Shown one piece after another: positions 30,611 to 63,762 of a stretch of DNA of 64,000 nt. Both the position numbers and the translations under genes were made by a program. Below the pieces are notes generated by a model. The model did no database searches and had not been told where the DNA came from. It saw only the letters and a program-made list of their open reading frames with translations. Source of the DNA: Heteronotia binoei (lineage: Eukaryota); assembly GCF_032191835.1 (NCBI RefSeq), contig NC_083239.1:40114001-40178000 (forward strand), given 5' to 3'. Within the stretch, counting starts at the first letter, position 1. Each line of letters begins with the position of its first letter.

Positions 30611-31909
30611 ATGTCACTCTCCAAACAGCTGGAGTCTCTTGTAGATGAATTAAGCAACTTCGCCTGGAACTCAACCCCACAAAAATATTACAATGTAATA
30701 AACCAGATAATTGAGCTGTTCAAAGATGGAGGAAAGGATGAAATAGTTTCTGAAGCAGAAGAATACCTAAAAATTTGGGAAAGCACGGACCTTAACATTG
30801 CTGTCACCGGAGAGGCAGGAGCTGGGAAATCTCTCTTCATCAATACTATGCTGGGATTGAGTCCTGGTGATGTGGGTGCTGCTCCCATAGGAGTAACGGA
30901 GACAACACAGAAGCCAGATGCTTATTTTCCTCCTAACTTCCCCAATGTGACCTTCTGGGACCTTCCAGGAATTGGAACCCCAGGATTTCCTCCAGAAACA
31001 TACCTTAAACAAGTAAATTTCCACCGTTATGACTTCTTTATCATTATATGCTCAAAGCGGTTCCATTCCACTGATGTTCAGCTAGCTCAAGAGATCGAGG
31101 CCATGGGCAAGAAGTTTTATTTCGTCCGTTCCAAAGTGGATGAAGATTTGAGAAATTCAAAGAGGGCCAATCCTAGGAAATACAGTAAAGAAAAGGTCTT
31201 AAAAGAAATCAAGGATGACTGCAAAAAGAATCTGGAGAAGCACTTGGAGAAGCAGTCCAACCATCAGATCTTCCTGATTGACTGTTGGGATCTTGAGAAG
31301 TTTGACTTCCCTTCCCTGCTAGAGACTTTGGAGGAAGATCTGCCCACCTTGAAGAGTCTGACCTTTGTGCTCAGCCTTCCCAACTGCTCCCCTGAGGTCA
31401 TACAGAAGAAGAAAAAGGCATTGAAGAAACAGTTATGGAAACAAGCTCTAGTTTCTGCTTTCATCAACGCTGTGCCCATCCCAGCCCTTACAATATGTTG
31501 TGATACTGCTTACATAGTGAAGACCATGCTTGGCTTCTACAAGCAGTTTGGGTTGGATGACAGCTCCCTAACTCGATTGGCCTGCTGGATGAAGAAGTCA
31601 GTTGAAGAGCTGAAGGCTGTGATTCAGTCACCACCTGCAAAAGACGTTGGCACAAATCTCTTGGTGAAGGCATTTGGCTCTGTAGTGGGAGGAATACTGA
31701 GCTTTGCTTTTCGCACAAAACGTCTTGTTGCAAGTGGGGTTGCAAGTGGGGTGCTTTCCTTCGTAGCCACATACTACATACTCTCCAAGTTCTTAGATGA
31801 AGCGGCTGAAGATGCTGAAAGAGTTCTCACGATAGCCCAAGAGCACGCCGAGGCAGGAGCTCCGTCTGCCGAAACTCACCTTAAAAGCCAGAAAATCAAA
31901 GTACAATAA
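30611..31909 (+). CDS. Immunity-related GTPase (IRG/p47, IIGP1/IRGC-like, GKS type), 432 aa, single coding exon
   Basis: Acceptor tccccttttatag| at 30605, ATG 30611. G1 GEAGAGKS, G3 DLPGIGT, YDFFII, G4 RSKVD, full C-terminal helical region (LSLPN...KKKKALKKQLW...FGLDDSSL...ATYYILSKFLDEAAEDAERVL). Confidence 0.9.
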   Translation: MSLSKQLESLVDELSNFAWNSTPQKYYNVINQIIELFKDGGKDEIVSEAEEYLKIWESTDLNIAVTGEAGAGKSLFINTMLGLSPGDVGAAPIGVTETTQKPDAYFPPNFPNVTFWDLPGIGTPGFPPETYLKQVNFHRYDFFIIICSKRFHSTDVQLAQEIEAMGKKFYFVRSKVDEDLRNSKRANPRKYSKEKVLKEIKDDCKKNLEKHLEKQSNHQIFLIDCWDLEKFDFPSLLETLEEDLPTLKSLTFVLSLPNCSPEVIQKKKKALKKQLWKQALVSAFINAVPIPALTICCDTAYIVKTMLGFYKQFGLDDSSLTRLACWMKKSVEELKAVIQSPPAKDVGTNLLVKAFGSVVGGILSFAFRTKRLVASGVASGVLSFVATYYILSKFLDEAAEDAERVLTIAQEHAEAGAPSAETHLKSQKIKVQ

Positions 31910-32220
31910 ATTTTTAACAAATCCTGAATATAAAATAAATTTCCAGTTCACCCCAAGGAGGAAAAGTTGGATGTTGTGACTCAAATAAATGGGTTTTGCA
32001 GATATTTTCCTAAATTAGGTTGTGGGGGCAGAGCGTGTGATAAGATTTTCTCTGTAGGTTAGACCCCCCAATGTTTCTAGTTTTAGCTTGCTTCTGTTAT
32101 AAACATAAGTATAGTTATATGGAGGCTGGTCCTATGGTCCAGAGTCCAGGCCAGGGCTTTTTTTGAGCAGCAATACATAGGAATGCAGTTCCAGATGGCT
32201 TGGTGTCAGGGGGTGTGGCC

Positions 32221-32951
32221 TAGGGTTGCCAAGTCCAATTCAAGAAATATCTAGGGACTTTGGGGGTGGAGCCAGGAGTCTTTGGAGGTGGAGCCAGGAG
32301 ACATTGGGGGAGGAGCCAGGAACAAGGGTGTGATAAGCATAATGGAACTTCAAGAGAGTTATAGCCATCACATTTAAAGGGACAGCACACCTTTTTAAAT
32401 GTCTTCCTTCCATAGGAAATAATAGATAGGGGCACCTTCTTTTGGGGCTCATAGAATTGGACCCTCTGGTCTAATCGTTTTGAAACTTGGGGGGTACTTT
32501 GGGGAGAGGCGCTAGATGCTATACTGAAAATTTGGTGCCTCTACCTCAAAAAACCGCTCCCCCAGAGCCCCCGAAACCTCCAGATCAATTCTCCATTATA
32601 CCCTATGAGAAACGATCTCCACATAGGGAATAATGAAGTGCTCAGCAGACGTTCTCCCCCCCAGCCGCCCCCCCTCCCTGTTTCTGGCAACTCTGAAGTG
32701 AGTCAGGAGTTGCAGCCAGTACATGTCAAAAGCAAAAGCCTACTCACAAGTTGCAGCCAACTTCTTCCAAGTAATACAGACACCCCATCCCAAGAGGAAG
32801 CCTTTCCAATCGGATACTGGAGCCTCCAGAGGGGGTAAGTCACATGGTGGCTTTGGGGGCAGGGCTTCCTCCGCTGGCCAGCTGACTGGGGGCGAGAAGC
32901 AGCCTGGGAAAGTGGAAGAACCCCCGCTGGGACCTGGGGTTGGCAAGCCTA
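32221..32951 (+). mobile_element. Non-autonomous hAT element (TAGGGTTGCC family, extended variant) inserted in a palindromic MITE
   Basis: TIRs tagggttgcc / ggcaagccta; TSD gtgtggcc / gtgcggcc. Confidence 0.75.
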
Positions 32952-33093
32952 GTGCGGCCTAATGTGCAAATAAGATCCTGCTGGGCTTTTTCTACCAAAA
33001 AAAAGGTCCTGGTCCAGGCTAAGATGGCTTCCATAAAATCTGAATTACAACAGAATAACTAGTTTGGCTATTAGTAGTGTGGCACCAAAATCA

Positions 33094-33367
33094 TGGGCTT
33101 TTTCACATTCTCATTTTACTTGCTGGTGACTTCCTGTTTCTTGGGGAGGGGGGAGGTCTGCTCCACATGTGTTTTGCTCCTTCTAGTGATCAATTTGATA
33201 TCACACCAATTTATTTCCAGCAGATTTAAACTGCAGGGAGATATAAACCTGTGGGATATTGAATCGACCGCTAGAAGAAGCAAAACACACATGGAACAGA
33301 TTCCCCCCCCCCCCCACAAAGAAATAAGAAATTACCACTGAGTAAAATGAGAATGCAAAAAAGCCCA
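33094..33367. repeat. Long imperfect palindrome (foldback/MITE-like)
   Basis: ~125-bp arms: tgggctttttcacattctcattttact... pairs with ...agtaaaatgagaatgcaaaaaagccca, with a short spacer. Confidence 0.65.
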
Positions 33368-35506
33368 ATATCTAGTTGCAAGGAATATAAAGATTGGATC
33401 CAGGCGAAATTGCCCACTTACGGAAAGGCAGATGTAATATTCAACTTCCCCCCCTACTTGCTGCAGATCTCAGATTTGGTCCCCATGCAGTTCTCAAGAG
33501 GCCACTGCCCCCCGCCCTCTCCACCCCGAGAACAGCATTTCAGGGAGATCAGTGGGCTACAGTGGAAGAGCCAGAAAAGTTCTGTTTTGCTGCCTTCAGT
33601 TCATGAAAAATTTAGACCGGATCCACTGTCAAATATAAGAGCCTAAAAGACAGGTATGAGGGATAGTCACGGCCAACGTTTGTGGGAGCATTTAGGAAGT
33701 ACCCACACTTAGAACGATGTTCAGTTTTTCAGTCTAAGTTTCATGTAATATGACATCGTTAATGTCAACCTCACATTCTTATGTCAAAGACTGCATTATC
33801 ACAAACCTGCTCTGTCTTTACAAAGAATGAGCTAGAGCCTTGTGAGGAAAAGACAGGATTTTTGGGTTCCACTTAAAAGCCAACAGTCTTGAAAAAGGCA
33901 ACGAAACATTGCCAGGTAATGTGGGCACCAGCTAACATGGACTGGCTTTGTGTGGATGAACTTATTCTTTATACTAACAGCTCATTGAAACAATAGTGGA
34001 CTGAACGTGCAAGACTGTGAAGTGGGATAATTTGTTTGTTAAAGCGCCTGTGTGCAATCTGGATGAAAGAATTCATTACAGACTGTTTTCTCATGATTTT
34101 GGTTTACGAGTCAAAAGCAGACTCTTAATCTTTAAAAAGTGCCTGTGTGCATTCTGATTTATTTTTCTGCAGACTGTTCAAATTCTTTTTAGTGCAGCCT
34201 GTTTGGGAAAAGAGGTTATGTCAAAGTGCCTGCGTGCACTCTGGTGTTTCATATTGCAGTCTGTTTAAAGGTAGAAGCTCTGGAATATTAAAGTCCCTGT
34301 GTGCACATTTATATTTCTCATTTTAGATTATTTAGACGTAGAGTCTACTCAGAGGTAGAGGTTACAAGGTTTTTCCTATCACATTTTTTTCCCCTGTAAT
34401 AAATGTTTTGATAGTATAGTTTCACCCTGACGTTTCTTCTATTATAGTTTATCTTGTAACCTAACATGTATCTTGTAATTTAGCATGTAGAATGTAAGGG
34501 TCCAATCTTGCATTTATGTATCAGAAATTATGCTTGGGCTTAGAATCAGAAGACTAACAAACAGCACAACATACACAAAGAAAAAGAAACAAAAAAAGTC
34601 TAAAAATGACTATGGCGCTGCATCCTTGAAGACTCTGACCTGAGGGCTAATGCAAGTTTTCTATGTGCAGTTAGATGCAGCAAATGGACAATCCACATGG
34701 ATTATCTGGAGACCAGTCACCTCTGAAAGACTGAGCTTTACCAAGAGCCAGCCAGCAGATGCTTTTCCTGTAACCTTGCTGATAAGCCTTAGTTTTGCAT
34801 ATAGCCCTGTCACAATCCTAGGCCTAGAGAGGCCTCTAGGGAAGCCTGTACCAGAGTAGCTACAGGACCTATATCTCCCAGGATCCTTTCTGTCCCCCGG
34901 ACTGGGTGAAAGCAGTTTTGGAGGGAAAAGTGGCCCAGAGCAGTGTTCCCTCTAAACTGAGTGGGAGCTACCTCACAGTTTTTTTAGCCTCCAGCTCACA
35001 CATTTTTGTCTTAGCTCAGTAAAAACGGCCTCAGAGCAAACTAATTTAAGCAGTAGCTCACAACGTTAATGCCGCTAGCTCACAAAGTTGAATTTTTGCT
35101 CACAAGACTCCACAGCTTAGAGGGATGGGACCTGGGAAGAAAGCATAAAAAGGCTAAGCTACAGACAGGGTTTGTAGCCTCTGGAGAGGCTGCAGACAGA
35201 GAGGTTCTCTCTGGGAAATGCTGAGCTAGAGGCAGGCTGCAGCCAGAGAGGGATCCCTCATCCAAGGAGGGTGAGTTGGCTTGAAGTTAGAAGAAGGGAG
35301 TGCCTAGTTGGTTGCATCAGGGCTTTTATTTCTTTGTACCAATCTTTACTGTTTTTCCATATTCTCTGTTGCAATAAACAGTTTTTCAAACCACTTATTA
35401 TTTTTGAGCACTTACAATAAACCTGTTGTTATGGTTAAACTGCCTGGGTCCTCAACGTCTCTTCGGTCACAGATAAAAGGTTTTGCTAATAAGGATGATG
35501 GGTGGT

Positions 35507-35992
35507 CAGGGCCAGCCCTAGGGTGCCCTGCGCCCCAGGCAGTTGTTCCATGGTGCTCCATCTGTGGCGCCGCCCTGTGGCAGCGAGCCCTGCCGCCCCT
35601 TCCCTCTGCTCACCTGCTTATGCCACGCCCCCTCTCGCCCATCCCTCCTTGTGTTATTTGCGGCACTGTTTTTGGCACCATGCTCCAGTCCCCACCTCCC
35701 TGGCGCACTCACAGGAGTGTACCGGTCTCCTCATCCAGGCTGCTTTAACCCGGGCATTTCCGTAACACGTTGTCTTAAGAGAGAGCATGACGTGAAGCGC
35801 TCTCTCTTAAGAGAACGCTTTACAGAAATGCCCAGGTAAAAGCAGCCCAGGTAAGGGGAGCACACTGGAGGTGGTGGTGGCAAATTAGGCGTTTGGCTGG
35901 GGTACCGGGAAGGGGGGAAGTCCGATTTGGTGCCCCCTCCTCCTGCAGCCCTAGGCAAATGTCTAATTTGCCTAGTGGGTGAGCTGGCCCTG
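35507..35992. mobile_element. Non-autonomous hAT element containing an internal ~115-bp palindrome (35735-35851)
   Basis: TIRs cagggccagc / gctggccctg; perfect 8-bp TSD tgggtggt at 35499-35506 and 35993-36000. Confidence 0.75.
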
Positions 35993-40993: not shown

Positions 40994-41579
40994 GTGAGTT
41001 TACAGACTCTGTTGATTCTTCAACCCCGTACAGGCAAACCATGATCCGGGTTGGTAAACTGGTCTCTCATTACTATTCTCCTCTCTGCCTCTCCGGTGTT
41101 TCTGCAGCTGCTGTTTAGGAATCAGAACGGACAGTTTCAAACACTTAAGTTTTCTTTTCAAATGTGGGCATAAGGCAGGTTTCTCCAAGGGTCACAAGGA
41201 CAATCCCTTTGAAATAATACATCGAAGAATAGTTGGGAGCACCAGTTTGGTGTGGTGGTTTAAGTGCGCGGACTCTAATCTGGGAGAACAGGGTTTGATT
41301 CCCCACTCCTTCACTTGCAGCTGCTGGAATGGCCTTGGGTCAGCCATATCTCTTGCAGAGTTGTCGTTGAAAGGGCAGCTTCTGTCAGAGCTCTCTCAGC
41401 CCCACCCACCTCACAGGGTGCCCGTCGTGTGGGAGGAAGGTAAAGGAGATTGTAAGCCACTCTGAGATTTGGAGTGGAGGGCTACATATTATTCCAATAT
41501 CATCTGCCTTTGAAGAGAGGGTTGCAGAGTAATGTGTCAGGTTCTGCCGTCTGATTATGTATTTCAAGAGCATTTCTTA

Positions 41580-41885: not shown

Positions 41886-42384
41886 TTTAACAAGTGGCTT
41901 ATAAAACTATGAAGGCAAAAGCCTAGCAATACCTTAAAGACTAACAATATTTATTCCAATATGAGCTTCCATGAGCCTGATGAAGTTTGGAAATAGATGA
42001 CAAAGGTGTGTGTGTGTGTGTGTGGGGGGGGGTCTTCATGATAGAAGTTTATAAAATTATGCCTGGGGTAGAGAAGCCTGGTCTCTCTAGGAGGCCTCCT
42101 CAGAATTGCTGCTTCCAGACCAGAGGGAAGGAGGAAGAGACTAGGCCCAAAACCTTCTTTCAGTTTGACAGCCTCTTCCTGCCAACTCACAGATAACCAT
42201 AGCCTAAAATGGCGTTTCTCCACAGGGGGTAAGAAGGAAAGAGCACAACAAGATTTAGGGGTTCTGGAGCTCCGCTCCTGTGAGCTCCTGCCCAAACTGA
42301 GGCCTGGTCTGAGGAAAATGACATCTGAATATTAAGTAGCAGCCAGAGAACAGTCACAATCTTTGTTTGTTTTTTTCAGATTAG

Positions 42385-43083
42385 CAGAATGATCTGGAAC
42401 AGTTATGGGTGGTCAGAGCGCAACTGAACAGACTGAATGCTTTTGGAAAAACCACACTTGACATTGCTGTCACAGGAGTATGGGGTGCTGGTAAATCATC
42501 CCTCATCAGTGCCTTGGGGAGTCTGTCAGATTTTGATGAGGGGGCAGCTGAAACTGAGGTGACACAAACTACAATGGAGCCAATGTGTTACCCACACCCC
42601 ACTTTTCCAGATGTAAGAATATGGGACCTACCAGGAATTGGAACCCCTGGGTTTGAAGAAAAGGAATACCTAGAAAGGATAAAGGACAGCCAATATGATT
42701 TTTTCATCCTTGTGGCTTGTCATTGCTTCACCACCTATGACATCCAGTTGTCCCATACAATCCGGGAAATGGGGAAACGGTTCTACTATGTGTGGTCCAA
42801 AATGGACGTTAGCATTAGGAATGAAAAACGGAAACCAGACTTCAGTGAGGAAGTGACCCTTCAAAAAGCCAGGAAATATTGCCTCTATCACTTGAAGAGG
42901 GCTGGTATTTCTTCTCCGGTGATTTTCCTCATATCCATTTGGTATCAGGATAAGTATGATTTCCCTCTCCTGAAGAGAGCCTTAGAGAATGAAATCAATG
43001 AACTCAGAAAATGTATCTTAAGAACAGCAGTTTTGCAAGATTCTGAAAAGAGAAGCCATGACAGGTATGTTGGGTTTAGTTAG
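42385..43083 (+). CDS. IRG G-domain-only unit A (exon or short gene; 5' end uncertain)
   Basis: Open frame 42385-43083 with G1 GVWGAGKS, DLPGIGT, YDFFIL, G4 WSKMD, IFLIS and DFPLL, then stops; no C-terminal helical domain. Acceptors at 42379, 42384 or 42387; donor acag|gtatgt at 43065 (phase 2). No in-frame ATG before G1. Confidence 0.6.
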   Translation, partial: QNDLEQLWVVRAQLNRLNAFGKTTLDIAVTGVWGAGKSSLISALGSLSDFDEGAAETEVTQTTMEPMCYPHPTFPDVRIWDLPGIGTPGFEEKEYLERIKDSQYDFFILVACHCFTTYDIQLSHTIREMGKRFYYVWSKMDVSIRNEKRKPDFSEEVTLQKARKYCLYHLKRAGISSPVIFLISIWYQDKYDFPLLKRALENEINELRKCILRTAVLQDSEKRSHDRYVGFS

Positions 43084-44479
43084 GGATTTAATACAGTGAT
43101 GTCGAACTCATGAGGGCCGGATCTGAGCTAAATTGTACTTTTTGAGGCTGGGCTATGCAGCCATGCATTACATAAAATGTAATGCCAGGTAGCAGAGATA
43201 TAAACTTTATAAAGGACTCAGACAAACTCTATCTATCTAACCGAAGAAGAAGAAATTGGATTTATATCCTGCCCTCTACTCTGAATCTCAGCGTGGTCAC
43301 AATCTCCACAACAGACACCCTGTGAGGTAGGTGGGGCTAAGAGAGCTTTTACAGCAGCTGCCCTTTCAAGGACAGCTCTTCAAGAGCTATGGCTGACTTA
43401 AGGGCATCCCAGCAGCTGCAAGTGGAGGAGTGGAGAATCAAGCAGAAACTAAAAATATAAAATGTTCTGAGCCTTGGAAAACATGAAATGGCTGGCCATT
43501 GCAAGCTTCCCCCACCACCACCCCGATCTACTCAGATTGGCAATGGCTCTCCAGTGTAATATTTCCCTTTGGCTGTGGATTTGAATGGACTTGAGAACTG
43601 GTGCCTAGTGAGTACTCTAATGTGAGTACTCACTAGGCACCAGTTCTCAAGTCCATTCAGGAGAGACAAGCTGGCTCAAAGCATCCACCCTATTTGCAAG
43701 GACACAACTCCAGCAAGTAACAGCTTCAGCTGGCCATAGGAATGCTGGAAACTGAAACTGAGCTCCACTGAAACACATTGCAGCACAGACAAAGTTGCAA
43801 GGAAAATGTGGAATGGATTTTCTGTTAAGGTCTCTGGGCCCACATAGACTATCTATCTGGGCACAGAGACCTTAGTGGAAAATCCGTTCCAGATTTTCTG
43901 CATTTTTAGTGTTCATGAACACTGTGGAGAGGAACTTATTTTCCTGATTTTGGAGGGGGGGGGGTGTAAACAGTATGGCAGTTTGTTTTTCTTTAATTGC
44001 TTTTTTCAACACAATGGTATATCAATAAATCACTTATTAATTTGTCGTTCTAATAAGCCGTCATCTAGTAAGATTGTCTTCTGGCAAACTGTTTTGGTAG
44101 CAAGTTTCTTTCAAATAAGTAGGGTATAAATACTTTTATGAATAAAAATGAGGATGTATTTAATAGAATCATAGTGTTGGAAGGGACCTCCAGGGTCATC
44201 TAGTCCAACCCCCCTGCACAATGCAGGAAACTCACAAACACCTTCCCAGTTTTTATTGGGGTCCTTCTGATTATAAATTTAGTTTTAAAAACCTGAAAAA
44301 AATAAAAATGGGGAAGATGTAATACATCTGATAAGGCTGTGTTTTTCTATCCAGGGAGTTTTAAGCGAATTGACACCTCCCCCCTCCCCCAGCAGTTGAA
44401 TCCAGATTGTCAAAGTAAAATGCAGTGGGAGCACTCATTATATGGAGGAGTTATCACAATATTTGTATTTATTTTTCAG

Positions 44480-45209
44480 GTCAAGAAGACACATAGATGG
44501 GAAAAGTTTGATGCCAGTGGCTAGCAGGAAACCTGAAGAGAGGTCTACCGGGAAAGAAAGAAACCTCTCAGATCTGACTGCATCAAGAAAAAACACACTT
44601 GACATTGCCATCACAGGACTGACAGGTGCTGGCAAATCGTCCCTTGTCAACGCCCTGCGGGGTCTATCAGATTTTGATGAGGAAGCAGCCAAAACTGATG
44701 TGATAGAAGGAACAAAAGAGCCAATGGGTTACTCACATCCCGCCTTTCCAGATGTAACAATATGGGACCTGCCAGGAATTGGGACACCTAGTTTTAAAGC
44801 TGAGGAATACCTAGAAAGGGTAAATTACAGCCAATATGATTTCTTCATCATTGTCTCTTCGAATCGCTTCACTGTCTATGACATCCAGCTGTCCCATGCA
44901 ATTCGGAAAATGACAAAGCGGTTCTACTACGTGAGGTCCAAAATGGACCTCAGCATTGAGAATGAAAAACTGAAACCAGATTTCAATGAGGAAACAACCC
45001 TTCAGAAAGTCAGGAAATAATGTTTTGATAGTTTGGTGGAGGCTGGTATCTCTTCTCCACGTATCTTCCTTGTCTCTAGTTGGTATTGGGAGAAGTATGA
45101 TTTTCTATTCCTGCAAAGAGCCTTAGAGGATGAACTTGAGGCTCTGAGGAGACGTATTTTAGGACCCAGATTGAGAAAAGGAGATGACCAGTACGTTGGG
45201 TTGAATTGA
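44480..45209 (+). pseudogene. IRG G-domain-only unit B with in-frame TAA at 45018-45020
   Basis: Acceptor atttttcag| (phase 2), ATG 44511, G1 GLTGAGKS, DLPGIGT, RSKMD. The frame continues after TAA (CFDSLVEAGISSPRIFLVSSWYWEKYDFLFLQRALEDE...DQYVGLN*), colinear with unit A. Confidence 0.7.
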
Positions 45210-47351
45210 TTCTTGATTTGATGCCTTTGAACAAAATTGTATTTAAAAATGGAGATCTGGGCCTATTATGCACGCACAACTTACTGCAAATTTTCTGAGC
45301 AGGAAGCCTTTAATGTTAACTCTGGCACCGATTTCCCACTCACCTTACACGGCTGTCACGTTCCTTCCTTCTGATTTCACACTATCTGCCCCAGGGCTGC
45401 AACTAGTGTTCCCTCTAAGCTGCAGAGTTTTGTGAGCTACTGGCATCAAAGTTGTGAGCTACTGCATAAATTATTGTGCTCTGGGGTCATCCTTCCTGAG
45501 CTAAGACAAAAATGTGTGAGCTGGCGGCTAAAAATCTGAGCTAGCTCACGCTAACTCAGCTTAGAGGGAACACTGGCTGCAACTAGCGTTGATGTTTTTG
45601 CACAGAAAAATTTGTTTGCCGCGCAAAAACGCTGACGTTACTTGCAGCCCCGGGAAGGATAGTGTGAAATCGGAATGAAGTCCCACTGAGAAGAGGAACG
45701 TAAGAGTGGCGTAAGGTGACTGGGAAACCGGTCTGGATTTTGTGCCTGATTTATGTACCTTTCCTTTTCCTCTGGTGCATTTATTCTGCAATTACAATTT
45801 TTAAAATGCACTTTTCTAAATTGGGCTAGAATGTCATTGGACATGAAATAACATCAAATGATATTAGCACCTGACTGTTTTAATGTTTATGTGTAATTTT
45901 AATTATGATGTAATTATGGGTTAATTTATGTGTATTGTGATTTTATGGGCTGTGAGCTGCCCCGAGCCTGCTTCGGCGGGCAGGGCGGGATATAAATCTA
46001 ATAAACCTAAACTTGTGATGTGTGGGGGATGGTGTCCAAAGTTTTTTTTTAAATTTATGCAGTTTCTGTATCACAGCTGAGCAGTAGCATCCAGCAAGGG
46101 CTTTCCACTTAAAATCTTGTGGTGCAGGTTTTGCACCTGCATTTTAATGGTGGTTGGTTGAATGAAAGGGAACAGAAAGGAACACAGGCAAAGGGGGAAA
46201 ACCCAATGTTGAAATTGACAATACCTTTTTTGAAACTGACAAGAAGCTGCAAAGCCCCATTTCTCATATTGGGGCGCACTTGGGGTTTCTCTGCTGTGTT
46301 ATCAGACCCTGTGCAAAATGGGAAAGAGTCACATGATCTCAATATGGGGAAACATGTTGAGTGTACAGTATGCATAGTAGAACTCACTGACATTGGCATT
46401 GCAAGCCATTGATAGTTGGCAATGTCTGTGGGCTGGCTCCGCCTCTTCTGGCTACCATTCTGGGGTTGGCTCCACCTCTTTTGACAGCCATTTTGTGTTT
46501 GCATGCGCCACTCTGTGTCACTTACCCAAAGGTGCCCACAGGCTTAAAAAGGTTGGGGACTCCAATGCAGGCATGAGGAACAAGAAATAAGACCCAATGA
46601 TAGGATGCAGAGAGTGCCAGCAAGAATTGCTGGGGTGGCTAAAACTAAACCAAAGTAAAAAAATCAGAAACAAAAGTCAGAGATCTGACTGACAATTCCC
46701 TAAATGAGTACACTGGGAATGTTTCTGTGTGTGCGCATGCTAGTTTTGGTCTTAACGTGTCTGAGGATGTAGTTTTATACTGCTCTGCAGCCCCTGACTT
46801 GGGCTGAAAGGTGGGACAGAAGTCTTGTTAGTGAAAATAAATTAATGAATCTTTGCCATGACAAAACACCCAGTTGCTATTGAAATGGTGATCCAAATGA
46901 TGAACATTTAAAGAAGTATTTTATTTGCATCATCTCTTGAAAACGAAACAGCTGCACTACAGTCAGAAGGCTGGGGGGTGGAGTTTGTTACAAATATCGC
47001 TAACACTGAGAAATACTCTCCCCCCCCCCAAAAAAGATTTTTTCCTGGTTTTCAAAGTAGTTTTTCTCATGTTATTAAACAAAAATGCATAAGGGATGTT
47101 TTACCATCCATTCCTCTCACTATTCTTTATAAATCAGTAACTATAAGGATCATATGGTGCGTGGGGGGTGCTATTTTCATATTGGGAGCATGGAGGGGCC
47201 CTTTCTCACGACTTGTGGTAGCTTTTGACAGCCAGAAAAGGAGAGCTCTTTTATACTGCTCACTTCACCTTGGAGTTAGAATCCCAAATTCTAGATTTTG
47301 TCTTCCCTCACCAGGACTTGTAAAATTGGGCCCCCAATAAACAGGACTCAA

Positions 47352-47643
47352 GGAGTGCCATGGCGCAGAGTGGTAAAGCTGCAGTACTGCAGTCAGTACT
47401 GCTCACGACCTGAGTTCGATCCCGGCAGAAGCTGGTTTCAGGTAGCTGGCTCAGGTTGACTCAGCCTTCCATCCTTCCGAGGTCGATAAAATGAGTACTC
47501 AGCTTGCTGGGGAAAATCATAGATGGCTGGGGAAGGCAATGGCAAACCACCCCGTAAAAAGTCTGCCGTGAAAACGTTGTGAAAGCAACGTCACCCCAGA
47601 GTCAGAAAGGACTGGTGCTTGCACAGGGGACTACCTTTACCTT
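47352..47643 (+). mobile_element. Sauria SINE with target-site duplication
   Basis: 14-bp TSD taaacaggactcaa (47338-47351, 47644-47657). The paralogous site near 62030 is empty. Confidence 0.85.
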
Positions 47644-48023
47644 TAAACAGGACTCAAAGTTAGCATTAAAAAATTGGCTGATGGCTGTAAGGCACAAGGG
47701 GTCCCCCTGAGCGTGGAAATGGGCTTTCACTCCATCGTGATTAGCAAATCCAGAACATGATTATGCAAAATAAGAAATTATACAAATGTATTCTGCTTGC
47801 AGAATTTGCATGGCTCACGGAAATCAGTTCTTGGCACTGAATTTGAGTAACATCGTTTTCAAGGCATACAACCCTGACCGTTTTGCGTCATGTGGTCTAG
47901 AAACTTGGGTTTTGCTTTAAACAGATGAGGAATTCTATCCATGCCAAGCGAGTCCTCTATTTCCAGAAACCTGACCGAGGTATCACAGAATACCCTGTCA
48001 TTGCATCTGCAGATTGGTGTCTT

Positions 48024-49025
48024 CTAGACCGACATCTTCTCTTTGCCTTTCAGAACTCTAGAGAGGATGTTTGGGATATAGTTGGTGATGGCTGTTAGGC
48101 ATCTACATAGTAGATGGTAGATGGTAAAAAATAAGTCCATCACTGCCTGAAAGACTGCCACTGGCTTGTCAATGGCCAGAGCTCTAACCAGGCCAAAGAA
48201 TTGGTAGCACTGAGAGCGGAACCCCCCAAGGAAGAACACGGCAGCCTCGAACAAAAGCACTGGCAGACACAGCAAACCCCAAACCCACGAGTACAAGACT
48301 GTGAGCCAATTCTTCCCCTTGTTCTCCAAGACAGATTTCGAGAGGGAACGCAGTCTGAAAATGAACGCTTCCTTCTTCAGCCACAAGAGGTCGCTCTGCA
48401 GCTTCTCCCGCAGGAGGGGGAAGTCAAAGCTCTGGGCGTCCCAGTTGGACACCAGGAAGACTTGGGGATCATTCACATTTTCTCTCAGCAAGCAGGCCGT
48501 GCAGTCCTCCTTGATGTGTTGGAGGACCTTCTCATCGTCATAGCCTGATGGTTGCCGTCTTCGGGATGCCTGCACATCAAGGTCCGTTTTGGCCCGTACA
48601 AAGTAGAACCTCTTGCCCATCGCCTGGATGTCGTGGACCAGTTCAGCGTGGATGGTCCGGAAGCGCTGGTAGCCGACGATAATGAAGAAGTCATAGGCTT
48701 TCAGGTCCTCTTGATTGGTGTGGGAGCCGAAAGATTCTTCTCTCCCGGGCAGGTCCCAGAGGACGACTTGCGGCAGCGTAGGATGTGGGTAATCCCTGGC
48801 CTTCATCGTTGTCATTTGGATGCCAGTCTCTGCAGCACCTGGGTCACCGGAGCATTTGCCCAGCATGCTGTTGATGAAGGAGGATTTTCCTGAGCCTGGT
48901 TCACCCACCACGGCGACATTGAGCAGCGTGTTGCTAAAATACTGCAGCGGTTTTGCATTTGTCATAGAAATGGCCTCTGACAGCTTCCTCTGATGAACAG
49001 CGACCTGAAATTCATCCATAGCCAT
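48024..49025 (-). CDS. Divergent immunity-related GTPase, 333 aa, single coding exon
   Basis: Acceptor cttcttttcgctgcag| at 49039, ATG 49025 (MAMDEFQ). G1 GEPGSGKS, DLPG, YDFFII, RAKTD, VFLVS, DFPLL; paralogue of 62602-63762. Confidence 0.85.
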   Translation of the reverse strand: MAMDEFQVAVHQRKLSEAISMTNAKPLQYFSNTLLNVAVVGEPGSGKSSFINSMLGKCSGDPGAAETGIQMTTMKARDYPHPTLPQVVLWDLPGREESFGSHTNQEDLKAYDFFIIVGYQRFRTIHAELVHDIQAMGKRFYFVRAKTDLDVQASRRRQPSGYDDEKVLQHIKEDCTACLLRENVNDPQVFLVSNWDAQSFDFPLLREKLQSDLLWLKKEAFIFRLRSLSKSVLENKGKNWLTVLYSWVWGLLCLPVLLFEAAVFFLGGFRSQCYQFFGLVRALAIDKPVAVFQAVMDLFFTIYHLLCRCLTAITNYIPNILSRVLKGKEKMSV

Positions 49026-51135: not shown

Positions 51136-52623
51136 AACCTCTCATGGAAGACTGTTGATTTCTGAGGCTCCAACTGCTATACAACAATTGTAAAAACTGG
51201 AGAGTATCTAAATATAAATTTGAAGGAAATACTGGGCATTCCGTTACTGAATTCAAGGCTTTGCCTCGTGTACTGCAGCCTGAAGACGGTGAATGAAATG
51301 GAGAGTCACCTAGACAATCCATGGTTGCTGCTGCTGTAACATCAACCCTCCATTGTAATTTTGCCAATGTTAGTAAAACCTGGCATCGAGTGCAGGGATG
51401 TCACATGCAGTTCGGGGGGCCAAATCAGGCCCCCCAGAGCAACTGGCTGTCATCTGCTTCCTTTTCCCTCTATCTTGCTTCCTTCTGCATAACAGCTTGC
51501 CTTGCAAGACTTGCTCAATTGCACAGCAGACCAAAACCTCTATTTTCTCCATTGGCTGAGGCTCCCCCGTCCCAGTCCTCTGCGGAAGGAAAGAAAGAGC
51601 CAGAGCTTCCTTTGCCCAGTTCCCTGGATCCCATGGGAGAGATACAAAGAAAGCATCCTTAAGACCAAAGAGTGCTAACATTTTAAGCATGTTTTAGGTT
51701 TTTTAATATATATATATATATATATATGGGTGTGTGTATATGTACACACACACATATATACATACATACACACACACATATATATATACTGTGGCTAATA
51801 GCCACAGATGGACCTGTTTGTTTGTTTCAAAATATAGAGAAGAAGGCCAAGACTTGTATCAACAGTTGTTACTTTTATACAGTTTCCTCCCCTTTCTTAC
51901 AATATCACTTTTCTATACAGCCATCTCTTTCTGTATAACCCTTCTAAAATGCAGCCGAATCCTATGATCCGATGCTCTTTTGCTCCCCCCCCCCAACAGT
52001 CCCCCAAACCTCCCTGGCCTGCAGGACCGGATCTAGGGGGGGGGGCAGAGGGGGAGGCAGAAGGGGCTGCTTGCCCCGGCCCAGACCGAGAGGGGGCGCC
52101 AAACTGGGTGTGGAGTCCATTGTATTCTATGGGACCATAAGACAGAATGGCTCATAAGAGGGAGTCATTTTTTAATTTTGCCCCCCCCCCCTCAAAAAAC
52201 ATGTCGAGCCGGTCCTGCTGGCCTGCCTTCCAGCCAATCTAACTCCAGAATCTCATTCCCTTCCCGGCCCTGGGAGCAAGAATCCCGGCTAATGCTCACC
52301 GTGGGTCTCTCTCAACAGCCCCGCATTGCACTGAGGCCCTTCAAGCCCCCCGCCCCCGGCCCACCGACCCACCCAAACGCACCAGCCAGCCGTCAAACCC
52401 CCTGCAAACTCCGTGACGCCCAGCCGCCGCAGTAGCAACACAAGCGATCGCGGACACCAGGCACCCAGATGTGCCCGCGGGCGCATCTGCACCACAGCTG
52501 GGGAAAGCGCAGCGTTTCCCGGGGGTCGAGGAGCGCCGCTGCAGCTGCCGACTCCTGTCTCGGTCTCGGTGGAGCCGGGGAAAGACACAGCGAGGAGGAT
52601 GTGGTGGGGCAGGATCGCCTTAC

Positions 52624-53099
52624 CTTCTGCTCCCCCGGCGTCCAGCGCGACTCCTTCCGGGCTTCCTCGAGTCTCTCAGCGGCTTTTTGTCCCTGCAGGG
52701 CTGTTCCCCCGACCTTCAGACTCGGCGCTCCCCTCCTGTCGCCCCGGTGCAGAAAGCGAAAGCCAAAAGCCGATTTGCGCGTCTGCAGCCCAGAGCCCGC
52801 TGGCCACCAGGGGGCGCCAAAGGGCAGCGCGCTTGGATAGATCCGGGCTCGCTTTTCCAACTTTCTCCCGGGTTTATCAGCTCGTTTTCGGCTCTTGGCC
52901 TCTGGCCGAGCACAATCGACTGGACTCTCTCCCGACAATAAAATCCATCGTTGCAGCGGGGCGTGTTAGCAATTTCCCAGCTCGGAGTCGGCGAGCCTGA
53001 CACGCACAGCTCCCCCGCCCCCCCTTTCACCGCGTCTGCTGGTGAATGTCCGGAAAAGGAAAACGAAATCCGTTTGGCTTCAGGTTCCCTTTCTTGGAA
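52624..53099 (-). promoter_or_regulatory. CpG-island promoter/first exon of the 48024-49025 IRG with ISRE and GAS motifs
   Basis: Minus-strand donor gcagaag|gtaag at 52624. GAAAGCGAAAG 52752-52762, GAAA-AG-GAAA-AC-GAAA 53053-53068, GAS TTCTTGGAA 53091-53099. CpG-dense from 52200 to 53330. Confidence 0.6.
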
Positions 53100-53439
53100 A
53101 TCAGCTCTTTGAGCGGCCGAGCCAGGGAGGAAGGAGGGGAAACAGGGCAGCGCTCCCGGGGGGAAGGGACGGCTCAGCTGCCAAGTTGCAAAAATTCTCC
53201 CAGTTTGGCACGCAGCCATAGAGCACCCGCAGCTGGACTGCTGTCTCCAAATTCTTTGCTTGCTTTAGAGTTACCAACGGAATCAAGAAAAGCTTTGGGG
53301 GGGAATCTTGGGCGCCCCAGCCGCAACTGACCCAGGCTGGCCTGGTCTCATCAGATCTTGGAAGCTAAACAGGATTGGCCCTGGCTAAAGTTGGGATTAG
53401 GGTTGCCAGTCCCCAGGTAGGGAATTATTAGGAAGGGAA

Positions 53440-56770: not shown

Positions 56771-56962
56771 GACGGGGCAGTGGGGGGGACGAGAACAACT
56801 GACAGCAGGCAACTGTTCAGCTCAGCCGCTTCTTGCAAAAAAAAAAGTATCCCCGTTTTGCAAGCAGTCAGAGAGAGCCCAGGGGTCTGCTGGCTCCAAA
56901 TGCTCTTGCTCGAGGGTTACCAACCTCCAGGGGGTGGCTGGAGATCTCCCACTATTACGATT

Positions 56963-58310: not shown

Positions 58311-58590
58311 GAAGAGCCGGTTTGGTGTAGTGGTTAAGTGTGCGGACTCTTATCTGGGAGAACCGGGTTTGATTCCCCACTCCTCCACTTGCACCTGCTA
58401 GCATGGCCTTGGGTCAGCCATAGCTCTGGCAGAGGTTGTCCTTGAAAGGGCAGCTGCTGTGAGAGCCCTCTCCAGCCCCACCCACCTCACAGGGTGTCTG
58501 TTGTGGGGGAGGGAGATAAAGGAGATTGTGAGCTGCTCTGAGACTCTTCGGAGTGGAGGGCGGGATATAAATCCAATATCTTCTTCTTCT
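58311..58590 (+). mobile_element. tRNA-derived SINE (Squam3-like), young subfamily
   Basis: Full-length copy with intact A/B boxes and (ctt)n tail. Confidence 0.75.
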
Positions 58591-59949
58591 ACTGTTGGAC
58601 GTCATAGGTTGGCCCACTCTCACCCTGTCTTGGAAGTTAAACAGAATTGGCCCTGGCCGGGGCTTTTTTCTTTTGTAGCAGGAACTCCTTTGCATATTAG
58701 ACCACGCACCCCTGATGTAGCCAATCCTCCTGGAGCTTCCAGTAGGCCCTGTAAGAAGACCCCTGTAAACTCCTGGAGGATTGGCTACACAAGAGGGGTG
58801 TGGCCTAATCTGCAACGGAGTTCCTGCTACAAAAAGCGCTGGCCCTAACATTTGGATGGGAGATCTCCAAGGGATACCAGGGTCACGAAGTGGAGGCAGG
58901 CAACAGCAAAGCATCTCTGATGTCTCTTCTTGAAAACCCGATGGGGGTCACCATCAGTCAGCTGTGACCAGGGGTCGTTTTGTAGAAAAATAGGTGGTGG
59001 AGCTCATTAGCATAACTCATTAACATATGCCGCACCCCCCCCCCCCGCCAAAAGCAACCTGACACAAGAAAGGAGAGCCCTGGGCAAACAAGACCTGCTT
59101 GAGCCGGCTAGAGATCCAGTCAGCCCAAGCAGGCCTTGCTCACCTGGGGCTCTCCTTGGCCTCCCCCCCACCCCAGTCAAAAGGCCAGCAAGCCACCTGC
59201 TACTCAGAATCACATAAGAAGTGGAGAAAGGGTGGTGTGGGCTTCTCCAGGGGTTAATGAGGGCTGCTGGGGGTATGGCAAAGCCCCTGCTGGCTGGTTG
59301 GTTGGCTGCTCTCCTAATCTAGGGATTGTTATGCAGCTGCACCTACTATTCAATGGACAAGGTAGGTGGAGAGGTAGAGGGGGAACCCTCAGAAAGGTTC
59401 AGGAGCTGTGCTCCTGCTGAATCTGAGGCCTGGCTGTGACTTATCGGCACTTTCCACACAGACACACCAGAAAAAAGTTTTGCAAACATCATGTTGGATA
59501 TGGTGGCAGAAACATATGGATTGCTGGTATCTAATATTTGTAGGCAATGCTATTGGAATGGGGCCAAAGGAGTGCACACCACTGTTCGAGGTGGGGTGAG
59601 GAATCCTCAGATGGAATCTTCAGCTGTTAAGTAGTGCTTGGTCCCCATTGGAAAGACAGGGCATCAATGAACCAACTAGATAGCAGCTTAATGGCTACCG
59701 ATTGCCAGTCTCCTGAGGACTGTGGTTTGCTGGGAGGGTAGGTGCCGAGGCTTTGGCTGGAGATCCTTTGCCCGTGTTGTGGTCTGCCACCTCTGTGAGG
59801 ACTAGCCACAGCCTTTCCCTCCCTCCTCTTTATTGCTGCTTCCCCTTTAGGTGAAATCTAGCCCCTTTCTCTCTTGGGTCACACAAGGTCCGTAACGGTG
59901 TATCACTGTAGCATACCAGACTAATTACACCACTCTGAGACTCCTTAAG

Positions 59950-60240
59950 GTAAAGAAAAGGAAAGGTCCCCTGTGCAAGCACCAGTCATTTCTGACTTTG
60001 GGGTGACGTCACGACAGACTTTTTATGGGGTGGTTTGCCATTGCCTTCCCCAGTCTTTTACACTTCCCCCCCAGCAAGCCGGGTACTCATTTTACTGACC
60101 TCAGAAGGATGGAACGCTGAGTCAATCTTGGCCAGCTATTTGAACCAGCCTTCGCTGGGATAGAACTCAGGTCGTGAGCAGAGAGTTCAGATCACAGTAC
60201 TGCAGTACCGCTGCTTTACCACTCTGCGCCACGGGGCCGC
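59950..60240 (-). mobile_element. Sauria SINE
   Basis: Reverse-complement copy. Confidence 0.75.
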
Positions 60241-62601
60241 GAAGGTAGAGAAAACAGGGGTATAAAAACCCAATCTACTTTTTCTCTCACATCCTCCTAA
60301 TAACAGAGATGCCAGTGTCCCTGTCCATTGCTATAACTGTCACAGCATCTCTTGCCCCCCCCCCCCCGTTGCCCTTGCACGGTATATAGTAGGGGTGGCC
60401 ACGCAGAATAAACATCAGATGTTTGAGAGCCGCAAGACATGAGTGTCAGATGTTTGAGAGAGGAAGGCAGGCAGGCAAACAGATGGGATGTAGAAAGGGG
60501 TCCTGAAAAGAAGAATACTTGATATGTTGATTATTCACTGGGTCTATGTAGGGCAGGGGGTCCCCAGAATGTAGCCCCTAGATGTCTCTAGCACCTACCA
60601 TGCATTTTCAGGAAGGTGGCAGGTCTTTGGGGCATGTTGTGATTTGCTGTGGAAAGAAAACTGTTTTTAGCAGTGGAAGCCGCAGCACAGGGGTTTTCTC
60701 TCAGGAACAGCTGTTGTTCTCATTCCTATGGGAGTATGGTGGGGGGGGGGGGGTAGGATTCTTTTCCTCCTGAGCAGCCGTGCCTGAGAGGAAACAAGGC
60801 TAACAAGCTTGTAGCTGGCTCCGCCTCTTCCGGCAGCCATTCTGTGCTTGGCTCTGCCTCTTCCAGCAGCCATTTTGCGTTTGCGCAAACCACCCTTTTG
60901 TCAATATCGCAAAGGTGCCCACAGGCTGAAAAATGTTGGGAACCCCAATGTAGGCAGTGGAAACAAGAAGTAAGACCCCCATGATGGGATGCAGAGAGTG
61001 CCAGCAAGAATTGCTGTGGTGAGTAAAATTAAGAAAAAAGTGCAAAAATCAGAGAAACAAAAGTCAGAGATGAAACAAGTACTTTCCTAAATTAGTACAC
61101 CAGGAATATTTCTCTCTGTGTGTACATGCTGGTTTGGGTTTTAACGTGTTTGGGGATGTATTTTTATACCTGTCTGAGCCCATTATGGGGAGGGTGGGAT
61201 ATAAATCTAATAAATAGAAATGTTGTTAATGGAAATAAATTAATGAATCTTTGCTGCGACAAAACACCCAGTCGTTACGGAAAAAGTGATCAAAACGGTG
61301 AACATTTTAAGAAGTACTTTATTCGCATCACCTCTTGAAAACTAATCAGCCATGGTACAATCAGAAGAGGGGAAAAAAGAAATCTGCTACAAATATTCCT
61401 CACACTGAAAAATAAAAAACCCTCATTCCTGGTTTTCAAAATATATTTTCTCACATTATTAAACAAAAACGCATAAGGAATATTTTACCATCTATGTATG
61501 TCTCACTATTCTTTCTAAATCAGTAATTCTTTATAAGGATCATATGGTGTGCGGGGACTGCTATTTACATATTGGGGGCATTCAGGAGGGGCATGGAAGA
61601 AGAACTGCTTTTATACGCCTCTCTTCACTTCCTGAAAGAGTTCTAGGGTAGTTTACAATCTCCTTCACTTCCTCTTTCTACAACAGACACCCCATAAGGT
61701 AGGTGAGGCTGAAAGAGCTCTTTTAAGAACTGCTCTTGAGAGAACAGTTCTGAGAGAATTGACTGACTCAAGGTCACCCAGCTGGCTGCATGTGGAGGAG
61801 GAGTGGGGAATCAAAACCTGGTTCTCCAGATTAGAATCCGCTGCTATGGACCACTCCACCACAGTTGGTTCTCACAGCTAGAGTGGCCCTTCTCACAACT
61901 TGTGGCGGCTTTCGAAAGCCAGCGAAGGAGAGCTCTTTTATACTCTCCACCCCACCCTGAAAATAAAATCCCAAATTCCAGATTTTTGTCTCTCCTCACC
62001 AAGACTTAAAAAAAAAGGCACCCAGTAGATAGGACTCAAAGTTAATACTAAAAAGTTGACAGATGGCTTTAAGGCACAAAAGATCCCCCAAACATGGAAA
62101 TTGGCTTTCACTGACTTGCATCCAGGGCTTATTATTGTAGCAGGAACTCCTTTGCATATTAGGCCATGCCCCCCTGATGTAGCCAATCCTCCAACAGCTT
62201 ACAGGACTCTTAGTACAGGGCCTAGTGTAAGCGCCCTGAGCCCACTATGGGGAGAGTGGGATATAAATCTAATAAAATAATAAAAATAAAATATGCAAAG
62301 GAGTTCCTGCTTCAAAAAAAGCCCTGCTTGCATCATGATAAGCAAACCCAGAACACAATTACGCAAAATAAGAGAAACCGTACAAATGTATTCCGCACGC
62401 ACAATTTTCATTGGTCACAAAAATAATTTCTTCTTGGTCCCTGGGTACCAAATCATTTTCAAGGCATGCGACCCTGACTGTTTTACATCATGCGGTCTAG
62501 AAACCTGGGATCTGTTTCAAACAGATGCAGACTTCTATGCCTGTCGACCGAGTCCCCTGCTTCCAGAACTGTGATCGCATCTGCCTCTAGATCGGCATCT
62601 T

Positions 62602-63762
62602 CTAGATCGGCATCTTCTCTTTGCCTTCCAGAGCTCTAGAGAGGACGTTTTGGGTATCTTTGGCGACGGCTGCTAGGCATCTATGCAACATGTAGTAGCT
62701 GGTAAAAAATGAAGGAACTCCTGCTAACAAGGAGCCGGCGTAGGGGTAGCGTTGCCACCAACAAATTTCCATCATTATCAGAACGGCTCCTAGAAGGTCG
62801 GGAAGTCTCCAAAGAATCAGGGGCATTAGCTTTCTGGACGTCATCACTGCCTGAAGAGCCGCCACTGGTTTGCCAACATCCCTCGCTAGAGCTGTGAGCG
62901 ACGGGACATCTAAGCCAAAGAATTGGTAGCACTGATTGCGGAACCTCACAAAGAAGAACATGGCGGCTGCGAACGAGATCCCAGGCAGGGGCAGCAAACC
63001 CAAAACCCCCGAGTAGAGGGCCGGGAGCAAAATCTTCCCCTTCATCGTGGCCTGCTTGTTCTCTAAGACGGGTGCAGAGAGGGAAGGTAGGCTGAAAATG
63101 AATGCTTGCCTCTTCAGCCACAAGAGGTCGTTATTTAGTTTCTCCCACAGGATGGGGAAGTCAAAGCTCTGGGGGTCCCAGTTGGACACCAGGAAGACTT
63201 GGGGGTCGATCACGTTTTCGTTCAGCAAGCAGGTCACGCAGTCTTCCTTGATGCGTTGGAGGACCGTCCGGTCGTCGTAGCCCGACGGCTGCCGTCTCCG
63301 GGACGCCTCCACGTCGAGGTCCGTTTTGGCTCGTACGAAATAGAACCTCTTCCCCATCGCCTGGATGTCGTGGACCAGTTCAGCGTGGATGGTCCGGAAG
63401 CGCTGGTAGCCGACGATAATGAAGAAGTCATAGCACTTCAGGTCCTCTGGATTGGTGCGGGAGCCGAAAGATTCTTCTCTTCCGGGCAGGTCCCAGAGGA
63501 TGACCTGTGGAAGTGTCGGATGCGGGTAATCCTTGGCCTTCGTCGTCGTTGCTTGGATGCCGGTCTCTGCAGCACCCGGATCGCCTGGCTGTTTGCCCAG
63601 CATGCTGTTGACAAAGGAGGATTTCCCCGAGCCTGGCTCACCCACCACGGCGACATTGATTGGGGTGTTGCTAAAATACTGCAGCGGTTTCGCCTGCACC
63701 ACGGAGATGGCATCTGACAGCTTCCCCTGATGAATAGCGACCTGGAATTCTTCCATAGCCAT
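62602..63762 (-). CDS. Divergent immunity-related GTPase, 386 aa, single coding exon
   Basis: Acceptor ccttttctctgcag| about 15 nt before the ATG (MAMEEFQ). G1 GEPGSGKS, DLPG, RAKTD, VFLVS, full IRG-like C-terminus (FFGLDVPSL...TSYYMLHRCLAAVAKDTQNVL). Confidence 0.9.
   Translation of the reverse strand: MAMEEFQVAIHQGKLSDAISVVQAKPLQYFSNTPINVAVVGEPGSGKSSFVNSMLGKQPGDPGAAETGIQATTTKAKDYPHPTLPQVILWDLPGREESFGSRTNPEDLKCYDFFIIVGYQRFRTIHAELVHDIQAMGKRFYFVRAKTDLDVEASRRRQPSGYDDRTVLQRIKEDCVTCLLNENVIDPQVFLVSNWDPQSFDFPILWEKLNNDLLWLKRQAFIFSLPSLSAPVLENKQATMKGKILLPALYSGVLGLLPLPGISFAAAMFFFVRFRNQCYQFFGLDVPSLTALARDVGKPVAALQAVMTSRKLMPLILWRLPDLLGAVLIMMEICWWQRYPYAGSLLAGVPSFFTSYYMLHRCLAAVAKDTQNVLSRALEGKEKMPI

Follow-up and report, generated by a model that had tools for sequence, protein, structure and literature searches.

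Five IRG units in a window of the Heteronotia binoei genome: probably three old lineages, in differing states of repair, within a larger cluster

To our knowledge, the control of IRG effector systems is understood in mice alone, where GMS proteins act. A 64 kb stretch of the genome of the gecko Heteronotia binoei (hereafter the window, meaning the whole stretch that was analysed) carries five units of this family, and raises the question of whether squamates have evolved control proteins of their own. A first reading, made from the sequence only, had proposed that one canonical effector is accompanied here by four divergent units, which act as regulators or decoys by way of a switch I and a dimer interface that have degenerated. 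We arrive at a different picture, in which the window is probably one section of a bigger IRG cluster and its units belong to three old IRG lineages that are found in differing states of repair. Among the divergent units, a regulator or decoy role appears plausible for the clade of a single one (u5), by analogy with the mouse system. The five units are:

30611–31909, + strand: u1, an intact single coding exon of 432 amino acids (aa).
42379–43064, + strand: u2, with a conserved acceptor of the 5' untranslated region (5'UTR) at about 42379 and an ATG at 42405 (MGGQS...).
44480–45191, + strand: u3, with the ancestral 5'UTR acceptor conserved at 44479/44480.
48024–49025, − strand: u4, 333 aa, with its ATG at 49025 and an acceptor 13 nt upstream.
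62602–63762, − strand: u5, intact, 386 aa, with an acceptor 14 nt 5' of the ATG.

Open reading frames (ORFs), tblastn and Pfam agree on these positions, which are those of the sequence-only reading. All five units match PF05049 (IIGP), with E-values from 1e-100 to 6e-54 and scores of 184–338 bits against a gathering cut-off of 24, and the protein products of u1, u4 and u5 are already on record (CM063341.1, assembly GCA_032191835.1). The window contains no runs of N, and a tblastn search across its 64 kb with u1 and u5 as queries (E up to 50) did not find a sixth IRG piece. The cluster is larger than the window, because a gene model of 1462 residues with at least four IIGP domains adjoins the window end, starting about 9.3 kb past it (about 73327 onward; L003:1-436, minus strand of that locus). 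The first exon of this model has an MGGKNSTE... start and is about 78% identical to u2, the 5'UTR acceptor included; the model may represent G-only exons chained from donor to 5'UTR acceptor, or may be over-merged.

For the assignment to lineages, the units were compared with a set of 288 vertebrate IRG units in a profile alignment, and trees were computed with FastTree on the G domains and with IQ-TREE on full units. Unit u1 falls in a separate clade (support 100/99, IQ-TREE), while u2 and u3 are nested in the clade formed by the first G domains of gecko tandem IRGs (0.991, G-domain tree). Unit u5, of which u4 is a paralogue, belongs to a squamate-wide clade of 23–27 sequences (0.999 in FastTree, 100/100 in IQ-TREE), which is distinct from the u1 clade, from the tandem second units and from a group with proteins named IRGC or 'GTPase 5'. 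Domain content differs as well: u1 and u5 have helical domains, u4 lacks 53 aa of the C-terminal one, and u2 and u3 consist of a G domain alone. The gecko units resemble the mouse GKS effectors (Irga6, Irgb6, Irgb10) in Pfam family, fold and GKS P-loop, and also in gene layout, in that one long exon holds the coding sequence and its acceptor is just 5' of the ATG; u1, u4 and u5 have a polypyrimidine-AG acceptor 5–14 nt before the ATG, the usual IRG layout. Against the solved mouse IRGs (Irgb10, Irgb6, Irga6, GM4951), u1 and u5 give E-values of 1e-50 to 1e-79.

The catalytic interface of Irga6 comprises Glu77, Thr102, Gly103, Glu106, Thr108, Ser132, Arg159, Lys161, Lys162, Asp164, Asn191 and Lys196 (Pawlowski et al. 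2011, PMC3042988). When Glu106 was replaced by Asp, Gln, Ala or Asn, oligomerisation was retained and hydrolysis activation was abolished in every mutant, and GMS proteins carry the changes E106R, D164H and R159Q (PMC3042988). Glu106 was placed by a HMMER alignment of u1 to the Irga6 chain 1tq6 and carried over to the other units by the profile alignment:

Irga6 position 106: Glu in u1 (residue 97, codon 30899–30901), Gln in u2 (42565–42567), Glu in u3 (44706–44708), Met in u4 (48813–48815), Ala in u5 (residue 71, 63550–63552).
Irga6 position 103: Gly in u1, Glu in u2, Asp in u3, Gly in u4 and Gly in u5.

The alignment confirms that G1 is GKS in all five units and that u4 and u5 are without the Glu106 equivalent; the earlier list of two such units was incomplete, as the Gln of u2 had been missed. 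All five keep Lys82/Ser83 within GxxxxGKS, Thr108, and the Asp and Gly of G3 in DLPG, while G4 is SKVD in u1, SKMD in u2 and u3, and AKTD in u4 and u5. Across the 288 vertebrate units, the P-loop Lys is present in 286 and replaced by Arg in the other two, a GMS P-loop occurs in none (nor in any window unit), and position 106 is other than Glu in 31%. Both u4 and u5 also carry Glu132, His164 and Ala191, and have REES in place of IGT after DLPG; with Met or Ala at position 106, it is in these residues that they differ from the mouse effectors. The changes D164H and N191A are not squamate inventions, as both are common to turtle and fish relatives that keep Glu106 and to half of the 288 units. 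His164 was also considered as a GMS-like mark and rejected, since 144 of the 288 units carry it.

The canonical unit presents the simplest case. The match of u1 spans PF05049 positions 3–373 of 375 and Irgb10 residues 18–410, so bearing out its description as canonical and full length, and its N-terminal and C-terminal helical domains are both complete. It has GEAGAGKS as G1, DLPGIGTPGF as G3 and SKVD as G4, a splice acceptor 5 nt 5' of the ATG, and gecko orthologues at 64–70% identity. Glu106, Thr108, Arg159, Asp164 and Asn191 are as in the mouse GKS effectors, from which u1 differs in being without the N-terminal Gly2 for myristoylation. With all the hallmarks of the catalytic interface, u1 is an ordinary GKS IRG, and a function like that of the mouse effectors is probable.

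For u2 and u3 we conclude from sequence comparison that they are best described as orphaned first coding exons of gecko two-exon tandem IRGs, and not as stand-alone G-domain-only genes. They are most closely related to the N-terminal portions of gecko proteins about 633 aa long, which are annotated 'interferon-inducible GTPase 5-like': u3 is 80% identical to residues 1–225 of P0165 from Gekko japonicus, and u2 is 66–69% identical to the same N-terminal part of P0165 and of P0151 from Sphaerodactylus. These tandem proteins have an MGGKSS start, which is a myristoylation-type consensus, followed by a G domain without helical domains and then by a complete IRG unit. The gene for P0165 has two coding exons (residues 1–228 and 228–633) separated by an intron of about 980 bp. 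At the DNA level, homology of u3 to the G. japonicus locus extends from 165 bp 5' of the ATG to 30 bp inside the intron, and that of u2 is limited to L001 10095–10677, part of the first exon. With the gecko tandem genes (P0165, P0151 and P0139 of Paroedura), the u2 and u3 copies have in common the 5'UTR acceptor, MGG start and donor; they differ from these genes in having no exon B and in lesions of start, frame and stop. A tblastn search with whole tandem proteins (E up to 50, both strands) found no remnant of exon B or of a helical domain near u2 or u3.

The lesions are of several kinds. In u2, a 2-nt deletion between 42427 and 42428, seen by comparison with the first exon of the adjoining 1462-aa gene, has put the G domain out of the frame of the ATG, in which a stop is reached after 18 codons; the ORF that contains the G domain (42409–43083, with GVWGAGKS) has no ATG before its P-loop. 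The donor CAG/GTATGT at 43064/43065 is intact. The start of u3 has been lost by a change from ATG to ATA at 44493, its Gly2 has become Asp, and 12 nt of the 5'UTR are deleted. Unit u3 has GLTGAGKS, and further on an in-frame TAA at 45018–45020 where relatives have Tyr, with homology continuing past this stop to about 45190; its donor region reads CAG/TACGTT, as against CAG/GTATGT in u2. In intact tandem genes such as that of P0165, exon A supplies the MGG start and the G domain and is spliced to exon B, the complete IRG. Units u2 and u3 are two neighbouring copies of exon A from which usable starts have been lost, with a nonsense codon acquired in u3 and exon B gone. The G-domain-only architecture formerly ascribed to u2 and u3 is thus that of damaged tandem first exons without exon B, and their start, frame and stop lesions, together with the absence of a second exon, also speak against an origin as evolved regulators or decoys. 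Units of the 'G-domain-only IRG' type would on this account be decaying exons of a widespread, undescribed tandem design that combines a G-only and a full unit.

Two-unit IRGs with a first unit that is devoid of helical domains were seen in 77 of 229 retrieved proteins; besides geckos and other lizards, these come from turtles, fishes and a frog (examples are P0165, P0151, P0157, P0139, P0014, P0019 and P0123). P0139 of Paroedura has three G domains. The second units of gecko tandem IRGs nearly always have Gln at the Irga6-106 position. In the window, copies of an interspersed repeat (41295–41505 and 43248–43441) lie on either side of u2 in inverted orientation.

RNA from four runs under the same species label was compared over 42400–48399, and it indicates that u2 and u3 are transcribed. 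A 780-nt contig of run X1 (depth 12) covers 42521–43061 and resumes at 44477–44715; this GT..AG junction from 43061 to 44477 is equivalent to one from 43064 to 44480, three bases being ambiguous, and it was seen also in one raw read of run X5. The sequence removed is:

43065–44479, + strand: intron spliced out of the RNA (one X1 contig and one X5 raw read).

The junction connects the u2 donor CAG/GTATGT to the old u3 5'UTR acceptor, keeps the reading frame, and reproduces a 343-aa model of GCA_032191835.1 (42574..45020). Such an RNA is made, on our reading, because the donor of u2 is still functional and the next acceptor that it meets is the old one in the 5'UTR of u3. The 343-aa product starts at an internal ATG (42574) after the first P-loop and ends inside the second G domain. 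An X1 contig over 44884–45091 has T for A at 45020, and hence no stop there; after 44947 it carries an additional C, by which the frame is shifted so that stops follow within a few codons. Unit u3 is therefore disabled differently in two sources, by the TAA in the window and by the additional C in X1, as fits a relic. We read the u2–u3 RNA as that of a transcribed gene relic, rather than of a regulator.

Tandem IRGs of the Irgb2-b1 type in the mouse are reportedly covered by Bekpen 2005. The u2–u3 RNA is like these in that two adjacent units are transcribed together and the spacer between them is spliced out as an intron (Lilue 2013, PMC3810784), which in the gecko was seen in one contig and one raw read. 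The mouse genes have two complete units in one intact ORF and the gecko tandems a G-only unit plus a full unit, whereas u2–u3 consists of two damaged first units and no full one: the frameshift in u2, the TAA in u3 and the loss of exon B leave no uninterrupted ORF that leads to a complete IRG unit.

Several points weigh against regarding u2 and u3 as relics. The G-domain ORF of u2 is open over 224 codons, and a 343-aa product may be made from the internal ATG. The ratio of nonsynonymous to synonymous rates (dN/dS) of first (G1) exons is 0.35–0.5 for all pairs, intact–intact pairs included; because intact and broken copies score alike, it separates neither reading. The RNA contigs differ by 2–5% from the window, and their source could be a different allele, a different lineage or a close paralogue not seen here. 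In a contig of run X2, the alignment begins at 42430 after 21 letters that do not align; as this start adjoins the 2-nt deletion in u2, the frameshift might be polymorphic.

Most reads on 42400–48399 are accounted for by repeats with many partial or chimeric reads. Interspersed repeats at 43000–43600, 44000–44400, 45400–45600 and 47200–47800 are covered to very high depth by each of the four RNA runs, and the high-depth bins were rejected as genes on the ground that they are repeats.

The two units on the minus strand derive from a duplication. Units u4 and u5 share a block that includes about 1.1 kb of upstream and 1.6 kb of downstream sequence, with 84% identity in the coding sequence, and u4 has GEPGSGKS, Met at position 106 and DLPGREES. 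Four in-frame deletions of 15, 12, 6 and 126 nt (53 aa) in the C-terminal helical domain of u4 remove the equivalents of u5 residues 236–240, 285–289, 293–295 and 308–350; by the structural model of u5, two helices (313–334) are lost with them, as is the beginning of the last long helix. With three outgroups, the u4 lineage is found to have accumulated 42 nonsynonymous and 16 synonymous changes, as compared with 10 and 16 for u5, which corresponds to about four times more amino-acid change in u4 (binomial p of 9e-6 for replacements and 1 for silent changes). The C-terminal part of u4 accounts for 27 nonsynonymous and 4 synonymous changes, and its N-terminal and G-domain part for 15 and 12. Distance-based omega is about 0.5 for the u4 branch and about 0.2 for the u5 branch, and in IQ-TREE the branch leading to u4 exceeds that of u5 in length by a factor of 3.4. 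In the 3' 376 nt of u4 that were examined for RNA, depth equals that of intergenic contigs, and it is zero in the raw-read runs. The sequence-only reading had treated u4 as being of the same type as u5, an equivalence that the C-terminal loss of 53 aa and the relaxed constraint argue against. We favour the view that u4 is a younger duplicate of u5, probably decaying or being remodelled under relaxed constraint on its C-terminal helical domain. As a point to the contrary, u4 may be functional, given that it has neither a stop nor a frameshift and that its G domain is partly constrained.

Of the rival explanations, the one that survives best would take degeneration further: u4 is already a pseudogene, the u2–u3 RNA is pure transcriptional noise, and u1 and u5 alone matter biologically. 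The loss from u4 of helices 313–334 and part of the last helix, the ratio of nonsynonymous to synonymous changes in its lineage (2.6, close to neutral expectation) and the background level of RNA over its 3' part would all agree with this. On the other hand, all four deletions in u4 are in frame, for which the chance is about 1% if they were unselected, its acceptor and ATG are intact and no stop is present, and replacements in its G domain are below neutral expectation. The four in-frame deletions and the lack of a stop argue for some residual selection on the u4 ORF, and we consider it possible, if doubtful, that u4 and u2–u3 are entirely without biological meaning.

The preferred picture of three lineages in differing repair includes one divergent unit that is in good order, namely u5. 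It is intact and under purifying selection, with dN/dS of 0.21–0.26 against the orthologues of Paroedura, Sphaerodactylus and Eublepharis. Its G1 is formed by residues 41–48 and its G3 by DLPG at 91–94, which is followed by REES; G4 is AKTD at 145–148, and the switch I sequence is TGIQATT, in which Ala71 occupies the position of Glu106. An AlphaFold (AF2) model built with 44 sequences has a predicted local distance difference test score (pLDDT) of 86, a predicted template modelling score (pTM) of 0.76 and a complete helical domain, with a disordered stretch at 98–102 in switch II; when it was compared with the PDB by Foldseek, the top 38 matches were mouse IRGs.

The relatives of u5 extend well beyond geckos. 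In a word search, six gecko genera were 71–80% identical to u5, other lizards (skink, cordylid, amphisbaenian, anguid, agamid, lacertid, teiid and iguanian) 50–59%, and turtles 45–48%. Phylogenetic analysis across squamates, which had been suggested as a check, recovered the clade without Glu106 from gecko to iguanian, with turtle IRGs as its sister group (0.993 in FastTree, 100/99 in IQ-TREE); its members are annotated merely as 'interferon-inducible GTPase 5-like', and our literature search found no paper that characterises squamate IRGs. None of the 27 squamate members has Glu at position 106, which is occupied by Ala, Thr, Met or Ser or falls in a gap; turtles and fish have Glu or Asp there. 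The segment after G3 is [KR][GE]xS-like in the 27 squamate members, and three turtle members have xGTS together with Glu or Asp at 106. Throughout the clade G1 is invariant, G3 and G4 are kept, and Thr102, Gly103, Thr108 and Arg159 are retained; its His164 and Ala191 are common to turtles and the fish group. In the ancestor of the u5 clade, after the split from turtles, the switch-I Glu, by which the catalytic water is activated in Irga6, would have been lost and the post-G3 segment rewritten, with the nucleotide-binding motifs kept. The cluster does combine a canonical IRG with units in which the catalytic interface is altered and G1 preserved as GKS, as formerly claimed, and in u5 this is a conserved trait under selection; the selection analysis that had been called for indicates purifying selection on u5 and relaxation in u4.

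FastTree also suggested fish IRGs as sister to the clade of u5 and turtles, a placement that we rejected as IQ-TREE did not support it. No snake protein among the word-search matches to u5 exceeded 39% identity, and the u5 clade may be missing from snakes. In Paroedura picta, two genes of the u5 type are separated by about 10 kb (L004:1-375 and 10001-11155), and they cluster together and not with u4 or u5; this clustering suggests independent duplication in each species, or gene conversion.

By analogy with the Glu106 mutants of Irga6, u5 would bind GTP and may pair with other IRGs, and it would be expected to be without cooperative hydrolysis of the Irga6 type. Since those mutants oligomerise without hydrolysing, a non-hydrolysing, regulator-like role for u5 is a reasonable hypothesis. 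In its full form, the u5 subfamily might restrain or guide canonical IRGs as a partner that is locked in the GTP state or does not hydrolyse, and so be a class of regulators independent of GMS proteins; we offer this tentatively, as a speculative and rather unlikely reading. The idea borrows from the restraint of GKS effectors, a GDP-dependent negative regulation, that has been proposed for the mouse GMS regulators (Irgm1-3), which the u5 clade resembles in its altered interface, the lack of Glu106 and the presence of His164. The differences are that G1 is GKS in every window unit, that u4 and u5 keep Arg159 and have Met or Ala rather than Arg at position 106, that His164 is ancestral and widespread, and that no phylogenetic link connects the gecko units with IRGM. 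If the idea is true, the u5 class would consist of regulators that evolved independently of mammalian GMS proteins (IRGM) and by a different route. The loss of Glu106 predates geckos. A conserved lizard subfamily without Glu106 would in that case be a concrete candidate for an alternative layer of IRG control, and failing that it still provides a natural experiment on the catalytic model of Irga6.

The opposing interpretation of u5 is that its clade comprises ordinary GTP-hydrolysing effectors, which tolerate the loss of Glu106 by relying on another residue or partner. Non-Glu residues at position 106 are frequent among vertebrate IRG units and Gln is the rule in gecko tandem second units, G1, G3, G4 and the four interface residues named above are retained in the clade, and the predicted fold of u5 is complete. 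Gln105 is nearly invariant in the clade and could substitute for Glu106, with hydrolysis retained, which would count against our own view of u5. In Irga6, however, no substitution of Glu106, Gln, Asp and Ala included, permitted activation of hydrolysis (PMC3042988). Moreover, residue 106 varies freely within the clade (A, T, M, S or a gap), and the position therefore looks released from a catalytic role, and switch II is rewritten (Ser132 to E, D or A) and disordered in the model. We judge ordinary effector function of the u5 clade to be unlikely.

It is very unlikely that all four divergent units are functional regulators or decoys that act on u1, as originally proposed: u2, u4 and u5 have open ORFs, the u5 clade is conserved, u2–u3 is spliced in frame and modelled as a protein of 343 aa, and mouse tandem IRGs form likewise, with Irgb2-b1 shielding effectors from parasite kinases (PMC3810784), but the ATG of u2 is out of frame with the G domain, u3 is without an ATG and has a nonsense codon and, in a second source, a different frameshift, exon B is absent, the 343-aa model begins past the first P-loop and ends within the second G domain, and change in the helical domain of u4 is near-neutral.

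The sequence-only reading had noted interferon-stimulated response elements (ISRE) or gamma-activated sequences (GAS) near three units. Strict ISRE matches number three in the window, with 0.52 expected, and one of these lies near an IRG unit:

43748–43759, + strand: a strict ISRE-like match in the interval from u2 to u3, about 730 nt 5' of the u3 acceptor.

In the alignment with Gekko japonicus, this motif is not conserved. GAS matches are not enriched in the window (10, with 8.5 expected), so that of the original statement one strict ISRE by u3 remains, GAS motifs stand at chance level, and support is weak. The 10-nt core of the ISRE has 16 matches where 5 are expected, and copies occur 1.4 kb 5' of u1 and 3.7–4 kb 5' of u4, which may or may not be close to the promoters. 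Near u5 and its orthologues, and 5' of the G. japonicus tandem gene, there was no strict ISRE apart from one, which is located 3.6 kb upstream of the Eublepharis u5 orthologue.

The region 52400–53200, which lies 3.4–4 kb 5' of u4, has a GC content of 0.56, long ORFs that overlap on both strands and three ISRE cores, and by these features is a candidate for a CpG-island promoter or a 5' exon. At the other side of the cluster, an ORF of 634 aa (9119–11023, + strand) contains about 18 C2H2 zinc fingers according to Pfam. About 560 bp past this ORF and 19 kb 5' of u1, the other two strict matches overlap as perfect ISREs (11579–11596, + strand) and constitute the strongest ISRE in the window.

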